Assembly (NCBI GenBank): GCA_038087875.1 | Contig: CM075989.1 | Coordinates: 11,036,001-11,100,000 of the forward strand | DNA length: 64,000 nucleotides | From: Malacoraja senta | Taxonomy: Eukaryota | Reading direction: 5' to 3' | Translations under genes and position numbers: made by a program | The notes under the pieces: generated by a model | Databases searched by the model: none | What the model was told of the DNA's origin: nothing | Seen by the model: the letters and a program-made list of their open reading frames with translations, nothing else | In this document: positions 39,826 through 40,384 of the stretch, piece after piece | Layout: every line of letters begins with the position of its first letter | Position numbering within the stretch: position 1 is the first letter of the stretch

Positions 39826-40097
39826 TGTTGCACGAGCTTTTCGTTCAGTCTCTGTGGTTGGTTGGCCTCCACGTGGTATTATGTCTTTCTTTTTTGTTGT
39901 AAGTTTAATTCCTCATTCTGTACTACAAAATGAAAAGGCTAACAGGAAAGTGACCCCGGTGAGGTTTTCCTGCATCCGCACTTGCTGCTTCTGACTGGCT
40001 GGCTTCTCACATGACTCTATTTGCAACATAGGAAGTAACAATCACCAGTTGATACAACCGATGGCGCGCAATTCAAAGCGCCGCTGGAAGGCAGGGC

Positions 40098-40133
40098 CAA
40101 AGATTACAGAGCAGAGCTCCTCTAGTATCTTTG
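40098..40133. mobile_element. 36-bp insertion with CAAAGAT/ATCTTTG termini and an 8-bp TSD
   Basis: GGCAGGGC|CAAAGATTACAGAGCAGAGCTCCTCTAGTATCTTTG|GGCAGGGC. Confidence 0.75.
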
Positions 40134-40384
40134 GGCAGGGCAACGCAGCTTAATGCATTGATCCTGGCTGTGCCGAGAGTGGCAACTGACCCTCTTTCCC
40201 ACTACTTTCAGAGCCTTTGTATCAGCCGAGCCTCGGTAGGATTTTGTTTCTGAGAGTTATTAATTTAAGAGTCATTTCACTTGCACCCAGTGTTACTTCC
40301 AAAGCATTACTGCAGTCGGTATAACGACTGAAGAAGGGTCTCGACCCGAACCGCCGCTCATTCCTTTTCTCCAGAGATGCTGCC

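Follow-up and report, generated by a model that had tools for sequence, protein, structure and literature searches.

Two palindromic inserts upstream of a skate tRNA-Lys gene are probable excision scars of a cut-and-paste DNA transposon

Two short palindromic inserts upstream of a tRNA-Lys(CTT) gene of a skate, referred to here as scar 1 and scar 2, probably record the complete visit of a cut-and-paste DNA transposon that landed, made a target-site duplication and later left. Integration by a transposase is indicated because the duplications have a fixed length and the ends are inverted, and the element is taken to be gone since nothing but its tips remains inside. Both inserts lie in a window of 64 kb, the whole stretch of DNA that was analysed.

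Anatomy of the two scars

The components of the two structures are:
40090..40097, no strand: left 8-bp target-site duplication GGCAGGGC of scar 1, exact repeat of 40134-40141
40098..40133, no strand: scar 1, 36 bp, made up of 16 nt of left tip, GAGCTC and 14 nt of right tip
40134..40141, no strand: right 8-bp target-site duplication GGCAGGGC of scar 1, exact repeat of 40090-40097
40328..40500, plus strand: copy of an abundant SINE-like interspersed repeat, targeted by the insertion behind scar 2 (about 15 partial copies at 77-87% identity occur in the window)
40377..40423, no strand: scar 2, consisting of ATGCTGCC, a 31-bp perfect palindrome and ATGCTGCC

A pattern-free scan of the 64 kb, accepting any insert of 20-80 bp whose inverted termini match perfectly over at least 6 bp and which is flanked by a perfect 8-bp direct duplication, returned scars 1 and 2 as the sole structures. 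First-order Markov simulations of the window gave a chance expectation of 0.05 such structures on average, and two occurred in 0 of 200 simulations. The first-pass annotation, made from the sequence, had described a 36-bp insert with an 8-bp duplication and two named arms as one of only two such inserts in the 64 kb, and both the structure (at 40090-40141, in all its parts) and the count were confirmed.

The left arm of scar 1 (40098-40111) reads CAAAGATTACAGAG and the right arm (40120-40133) reads CAAAGATACTAGAG in reverse complement. The insert thus runs from CAAAGAT to ATCTTTG, with the outer 14 nt on each side being inverted copies of CAAAGATnnnAGAG, the left one with TAC and the right one with ACT. 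The 16 nt at 40098-40113 are unique to the left tip, while the self-complementary centre GAGCTC (40114-40119) could derive from either tip. In scar 2 the duplications ATGCTGCC occupy 40377-40384 and 40416-40423, and the insert between them (40385-40415) is a perfect 15+1+15 palindrome of 31 bp with a central G. Its arms share the CAAAGATnnnAGAG end motif of scar 1, with CAT on both arms, and a gap of 251 bp separates scar 1 from the insert of scar 2. The two scars therefore differ at tip positions 8-10 (TAC/ACT vs CAT/CAT), and the sequence after AGAG also differs; the 8-bp duplications of both scars and the 31-bp palindrome contain no mutation. The annotation's reading of scar 1 as an event independent of the insert at 40385 and of the same family is upheld by the different duplications and the common CAAAGATnnnAGAG ends. 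The window holds no further CAAAGATnnnAGAG terminus besides those of the two scars, and a search for elements of up to 6 kb that have matching ends of 14 nt inside an 8-bp duplication found none.

Empty sites and flanking repeats

In the alignment of the host repeat of scar 2, seven other copies in the window each contain a single uninterrupted GATGCTGCC. Because these seven paralogues run through with the single GATGCTGCC, the 39 extra bases at scar 2 (31 plus the 8-bp duplication) represent an insertion with target duplication. Scar 1 has no paralogous empty site because its flanks are unique in the window. A contig of a relative about 95% identical to the window (record 25 of run X5) aligns with 39850-40097; the alignment stops precisely where the first copy of the duplication ends, and 22 letters beyond it stay unaligned. 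This contig end at the junction of duplication and insert would be compatible with an orthologous empty site for scar 1, and is treated as a lead that is not counted as evidence.

Several other features of the locus were observed. Compared with the window, the orthologous contig of run X5, from a related species, has 28 additional nt behind 40312. The SINE-like repeat (40328-40640 and about 15 other places) is covered in skate runs at a summed contig depth of 10^6-10^7, two of its copies lie head to head just upstream of the tRNA-Lys gene, and the copy at 40328-40640 retains more CpG than its surroundings.

Related scars in public metagenomes

The family pattern CAAAGATnnnAGAG(0-12)CTCTnnnATCTTTG sees inserts of up to 40 bp and therefore sets no upper limit to arm length or size. 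It matched 105 public metagenome contigs, equivalent to about 77 distinct scars of 28-40 bp after duplicate removal. The same pattern gave 4 matches in 596 Gb of prokaryote genomes, all of them ordinary hairpins without duplications, and 0 in viral contigs. Nearly all of the metagenome contigs come from a few assemblies, and they are assigned to metazoan host DNA because of the metazoan genes found on them (Mab-21, FAM161, laminin, ninjurin and C2H2 zinc fingers). A neighbouring Mab-21-like gene matches metagenomic relatives only, plus, weakly, oyster sequences among named proteins; the host is an invertebrate, probably a lophotrochozoan, and the contig series may stem from gutless marine worm projects.

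The tips of these relatives read CAAAGAT-TAT-AGAGCGAGC..., with AAT, TAC, TTT, CCT and CAT as minor variants in place of TAT. Over 15-16 nt, the CAT variant is the same as the arms of scar 2, and the TAC variant the same as the left arm of scar 1. Duplications in the relatives are of 7 bp, not 8 bp, and are present at 55 of the 77 loci with at most one mismatch. The reconstructed target logo of the relatives is palindromic, with G1 at 38%, T2 at 61%, A6 at 61% and C7 at 38%, with a symmetric flank bias. Both skate targets (GGCAGGGC and ATGCTGCC) are GC-rich, two sites being too few for a motif.

Abundance in skate sequencing runs

Contigs of four public runs were placed on 39850-40520 and their depths were summed. 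Over 40103-40125, inside scar 1, the summed contig depth was approximately 69k, 73k, 19k and 2k in the four runs, compared with 20-50 at the unique flanks where these were covered; scar 1 thus has 10^2-10^3 times the depth of its unique flanks in the four runs, with no variant letter above 10%. This suggests some 10^2-10^3 near-identical copies of the 36-mer in several related skate species, collapsed contig depth being no copy number. Depth over scar 2 was approximately 700-5,800, with variants at tip positions 8, 9, 15 and 16 and at some mirror positions, and contigs with 1- and 3-nt deletions at the centre were also found. These values indicate a smaller and more varied population around the 31-mer, with the same reservation that contig depth is no copy number.

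Position of the scars relative to the tRNA gene

The genomic context of the scars is defined by two further features:
39400..40700, no strand: CpG-retaining domain around the tRNA gene that holds both scars (CpG observed/expected compared with the window median)
39752..39825, minus strand: tRNA-Lys(CTT), the sole tRNA gene of the window (ARAGORN; Rfam 63.3 bits)

The tRNA gene is followed on the minus strand by a TTTT run after its 3′ end. The inserts of scar 1 and scar 2 start 273 bp and 560 bp upstream of its 5′ end, respectively, so that both lie within about 600 bp upstream of tRNA-Lys, as the annotation had stated. Over 39400-40700 the CpG observed/expected ratio is 0.66, or 0.70 when the tRNA gene and the scars are left out, and the window median is 0.34; this places the domain in the top 14% of 1.3-kb windows. 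Such CpG retention is compatible with open, unmethylated chromatin at an active tRNA gene. No scar lies in the window's strongest CpG island, at 47.2-50.3 kb. An intact 369-codon open reading frame of a rhodopsin-family G-protein-coupled receptor (GPCR; 48833-49942, minus strand; Pfam 7tm_1, E 8e-57) lies inside that island (47200-50300).

At hundreds to thousands of copies, approximately 0.1-0.3 scars are expected per 64-kb window, as estimated from the contig depths and an assumed gigabase-size genome; by the same estimate, a second scar less than 300 bp from the first has a chance of order 10^-3. The annotation had proposed either a local hotspot in open Pol III chromatin or local hopping. 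The closeness of the scars does appear non-random, and of the two proposals the hotspot is favoured. Local hopping of one element, with reinsertion approximately 290 bp away, is an unlikely source of the cluster. P elements do prefer promoters and replication origins, hop locally and reinsert preferentially nearby (PMC7776569), and at three invertebrate loci a further terminus lies 40-350 bp from a scar; however, a single element would leave equal tips, whereas the scars differ at positions 8-10 and after AGAG and are undecayed. Two different source elements are indicated because the tip variants differ while the duplications and the palindrome have not decayed, and two source elements favour a landing hotspot over the hopping of one. 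A preferred landing site in the CpG-retaining domain beside the tRNA gene is therefore suggested, with targeting resting on two events here.

The Pol III part of the proposal fared less well. The open, CpG-retaining context was borne out, but a rule specific to Pol III was not, since only one of the 77 relatives lies near a tRNA gene and the strongest CpG island is free of scars. That relative (L053:1618-1938) is a 28-bp scar 222 bp upstream of tRNA-Glu(CTC), a proximity expected by chance at about 0.02 on a rough reckoning; its geometry is similar to that of the skate tRNA-Lys locus. A fixed short distance upstream of tRNA genes, as in the Ty3/TRE type, was not found, the distances being 273 and 560 bp and one of the 77 relatives having a tRNA gene on its contig. 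Dada-type transposons, which make 6-7-bp duplications and target small-RNA genes, were considered and rejected, as the inserts do not lie inside an RNA gene.

Joint spectrum

Joints were scored against a putative 24-nt tip that was itself derived from these 77 scars, which makes the scoring partly circular. An arm overlap of exactly 2 nt, GC or CG, is present in 38 of the 77 scars; another 7 are joined bluntly, and the remainder contain 1-11 nt of filler. Sizes form a series of 28, 30, 32, 34, 36 and 38 bp, among others, whose members differ at the centre only and are accounted for by 2-nt GC joints. An asymmetric 37-mer (24 + 15 - 2) recurs at no fewer than 14 distinct loci, in both orientations and with its own duplication at each. 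Three half-scars end 15-17 nt into the tip. A composite scar with the 7-bp duplication ACAGAAC (L026:220-318, contig Ga0209367_1010166) consists of a 15-nt left tip, 47 nt of filler and a complete 37-bp tip-to-tip unit; 27 nt of its filler (234-260) are an exact inverted copy of L026:1-27, 200 bp away, and the arrangement looks like the outcome of templated-insertion or snap-back repair synthesis. Because of the 2-nt joints, the blunt joins, the filler and the half-scars, the series is read as products of break repair by end-joining, in parallel with the Drosophila junctions, and not as a mobile unit.

Two further contigs (L096:425-520 and L102:1305-1400) contain a 38-bp scar with the duplication ATTGCAC, a 38-bp near-perfect palindrome of the flank, and a solo terminus after the reverse complement of the duplication. 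This arrangement may reflect a hairpin-mediated inverted duplication at the break.

Proposed mechanism

An element with CAAAGATnnnAGAG... termini integrated at GGCAGGGC, with an 8-bp staggered cut giving rise to the duplication, and nothing but its two tips is left. In the proposed sequence of events, excision would then have cut one strand flush with the element and the other some 15-24 nt inside it, a chemistry for which the P element is the only known case, so that each chromosomal end kept a 3′ tail of transposon tip, of which approximately 14-22 nt per tip would be left in the skate scars. At scar 1 the tails would have been end-joined at the self-complementary GAGCTC, giving 16 + 6 + 14 = 36 bp; the hexamer was perhaps present in both tails, in which case each tail measured no less than 20-22 nt. 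A recurrent, dominant 36-mer joint would follow because a 6-nt self-complementary microhomology such as GAGCTC would form it at many loci, which would account for the high copy number of the 36-mer. Scar 2 would be a second, independent scar left by a different source element of the same family, with 16 + 15 nt joined bluntly, and the clustering would stem from a preference for open, unmethylated chromatin beside the active tRNA gene. The annotation's reading as micro-insertions is accordingly refined, both structures being better read as excision scars than as units that arrived at their present size.

Long staggered donor cleavage is seen only through its product, the 14-24 nt per tip that the scars of the relatives and of the skate keep. 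Neither the window nor 436 kb of related loci yielded a parent element or a transposase. Of the open reading frames of at least 110 aa in the window, 42 in all, the 10 longest gave no transposase in Pfam, only a LINE reverse transcriptase, a GPCR and low-complexity repeats, and the 10 longest eukaryote-like frames of the related loci gave no transposase with a THAP domain and a P-type RNase H domain bearing a GTP-binding insertion. A search of the 105 related loci for parents returned only the three half-termini next to scars and no transposase; a search of viral contigs for a solo terminus returned 13 chance matches in phage-like contigs with no partner end, and a literature search for the tip sequences returned nothing relevant.

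Elsewhere in the window, two adjacent open reading frames at 15291-16504 carry halves of RVT_1 and represent a frame-shifted LINE fragment. Long overlapping frames at 60850-62110, in several frames on both strands and with low-complexity Pfam matches, probably mark a tandem or low-complexity repeat block, and a run of N occupies 63443-63642.

Comparison with known transposon superfamilies

Superfamily and cleavage stagger are drawn from the scars alone, because the parent element and the transposase were not found. As judged from these sequences, the P superfamily would be the somewhat favoured assignment, and hAT and an uncharacterised superfamily with similar chemistry would each be a distinctly less probable one. 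P transposase cuts one strand at the element end and the other 17 nt inside, leaving 17-nt 3′ tails (PMC7776569, PMC10983969), a stagger singled out as unusual among characterised cut-and-paste transposons (PMC7776569). Excision junctions of P{wa} in Drosophila consist of the duplication and 14-17 nt of each inverted repeat, mostly joined at 2-nt microhomology (PMC2895639 Table 1); some are blunt or contain templated filler, and the commonest junction recurred 14 times (PMC2895639). Like the skate scars, these footprints have intact 8-bp duplications, keep the tips and form a palindromic product of approximately 28-36 bp (PMC2895639, PMC7776569). However, the tips of Drosophila P and of the skate scars (CATGATG... 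vs CAAAGAT...) are unrelated past the first two bases, CA, and the arms here reach 20-24 nt as against 17 nt. The skate scars are also fixed genomic fossils in a cartilaginous fish, apparently many of them, whereas the P{wa} junctions are laboratory events.

Duplications in the P superfamily are of 8 bp (P) or 7 bp (Galileo, 1360) (PMC3698922), and the scars have 8 bp at both skate sites and 7 bp at 55 of the 77 relatives. The relatives resemble Galileo and 1360 in their 7-bp duplications, and their G-T...A-C preference is akin to the Galileo target GTANTAC (PMC4168063). Galileo differs in its very long fold-back inverted repeats, approximately 15-24 nt of terminus being known here, and the cited Galileo literature contains no scar series. 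In zebrafish, Pdre2/zfTHAP9 is likewise a vertebrate cut-and-paste system, with 13-bp inverted repeats and 8-bp duplications (PMC10983969); its ends read CATACCTGTCAAC, and its reported excision products in cells show flanking deletions and no fossil scar series.

A hAT element would have produced these structures by abortive gap repair, in which excision with a hairpin on the flank is followed by the copying of 15-24 nt per end from the sister and then by end-joining. This origin is improbable, in spite of some likeness: CAAAG fits the hAT terminal motif YARNG, the skate duplications have the canonical 8 bp of hAT (PMC3014272), and the T2/A(n-1) bias resembles the hAT target nTnnnnAn (PMC10368747). 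Gap repair is moreover documented to end at times in incomplete synthesis followed by end-joining (PMC2895639). The invertebrate scars, which share these tips, differ, however, in their 7-bp duplications, which are known in the P superfamily, and their G1/C7 preference matches Galileo. Abortive repair would also be expected to leave a broad range of sizes, whereas approximately 77 tip-only scars stand against 3 longer ends in the 436 kb, a sample selected for scars. Excision of hAT elements such as Ac, hobo and Hermes forms hairpins on the flanks and leaves no transposon tips behind. All scars here keep both tips, and the tip-less footprint of hAT type was not seen; because hAT excision leaves no tips, a hAT origin would need abortive gap repair as the usual outcome. 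A further point of likeness is that the ends of Ac and Tam3 read YARRGAT. The literature was searched for these end sequences and gave nothing, and no hAT family with a 7-bp duplication was found described in a non-systematic search.

The 36-mer as a possible mobile unit

The 36-mer might instead be a mobile, tip-only miniature element, an extreme MITE mobilised in trans that arrived at its present size. It shares with MITEs the lack of coding sequence, the inverted ends, the target duplication and a high copy number. The depth-based estimate of 10^2-10^3 copies that are nearly identical, no variant letter exceeding 10%, would fit such an element, as would the asymmetric 37-mer at 14 or more invertebrate loci in both orientations with its own duplications. 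The scars are unlike MITEs, however, in measuring 31-36 bp without internal sequence, and their centre-only variation points to a repair product rather than to a replicating lineage: nested sizes differ only at the centre, and filler-bearing and half scars exist. Identical joints are in any case expected to recur at long or favoured microhomology, as with the Drosophila junction that was recovered 14 times. Internal transposase-binding sites are required for the transposition of P, and a unit of 31-36 bp contains none. In Drosophila P these sites lie beyond the inverted repeats (PMC7776569). Taken with the joint spectrum, these points make a mobile 36-mer rather remote, and the excision-scar reading is preferred.

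A chance palindrome or an assembly or library artefact is next to negligible, since short palindromes do arise by chance (the 4 prokaryote hairpins are examples) but two structures appeared in none of the 200 simulations and identical termini, framed by duplications, recur across independent projects and organisms. A sequencing-adapter artefact was likewise rejected in view of the diversity of the family, the independent projects and the locus-specific duplications; the insert sequence matches no library adapter known to us.

Implications

What is new here is the proposed cross-phylum family with its joint spectrum, the target logo, the estimate of abundance, the case for two source elements and the CpG context. 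It is a tentative and on present evidence unlikely-sounding generalisation that one cut-and-paste family, P-like or of an uncharacterised superfamily with an even longer stagger of approximately 20-24 nt, is shared by a skate and marine invertebrates and left hundreds to thousands of datable scars in skate genomes, mainly at open chromatin such as that of tRNA genes, promoters and replication origins. If true, this would imply horizontal transfer between marine animals, for which the identity of skate and invertebrate tips over 15-16 nt is a lead. In the bolder variant, tip-only 36-37-mers would, if real, be the smallest mobile elements known. For annotation, palindromes of 28-46 bp framed by 7-8-bp repeats form a recognisable class that would escape repeat libraries.

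Biochemical knowledge of P-type transposition comes from the fly and from one active relative among vertebrates, that of the zebrafish. A large series of fossil scars in a cartilaginous fish would show that P-type chemistry was very active in an early-branching vertebrate lineage. If the reading is true, such a series would document, naturally and across the whole genome, how transposons landed and left in the germ line of a vertebrate. It would read out two things that genomes do not normally reveal, namely the landing sites, including those later vacated, and the germ-line repair of the breaks through 2-nt GC microhomology, blunt joints and templated filler.
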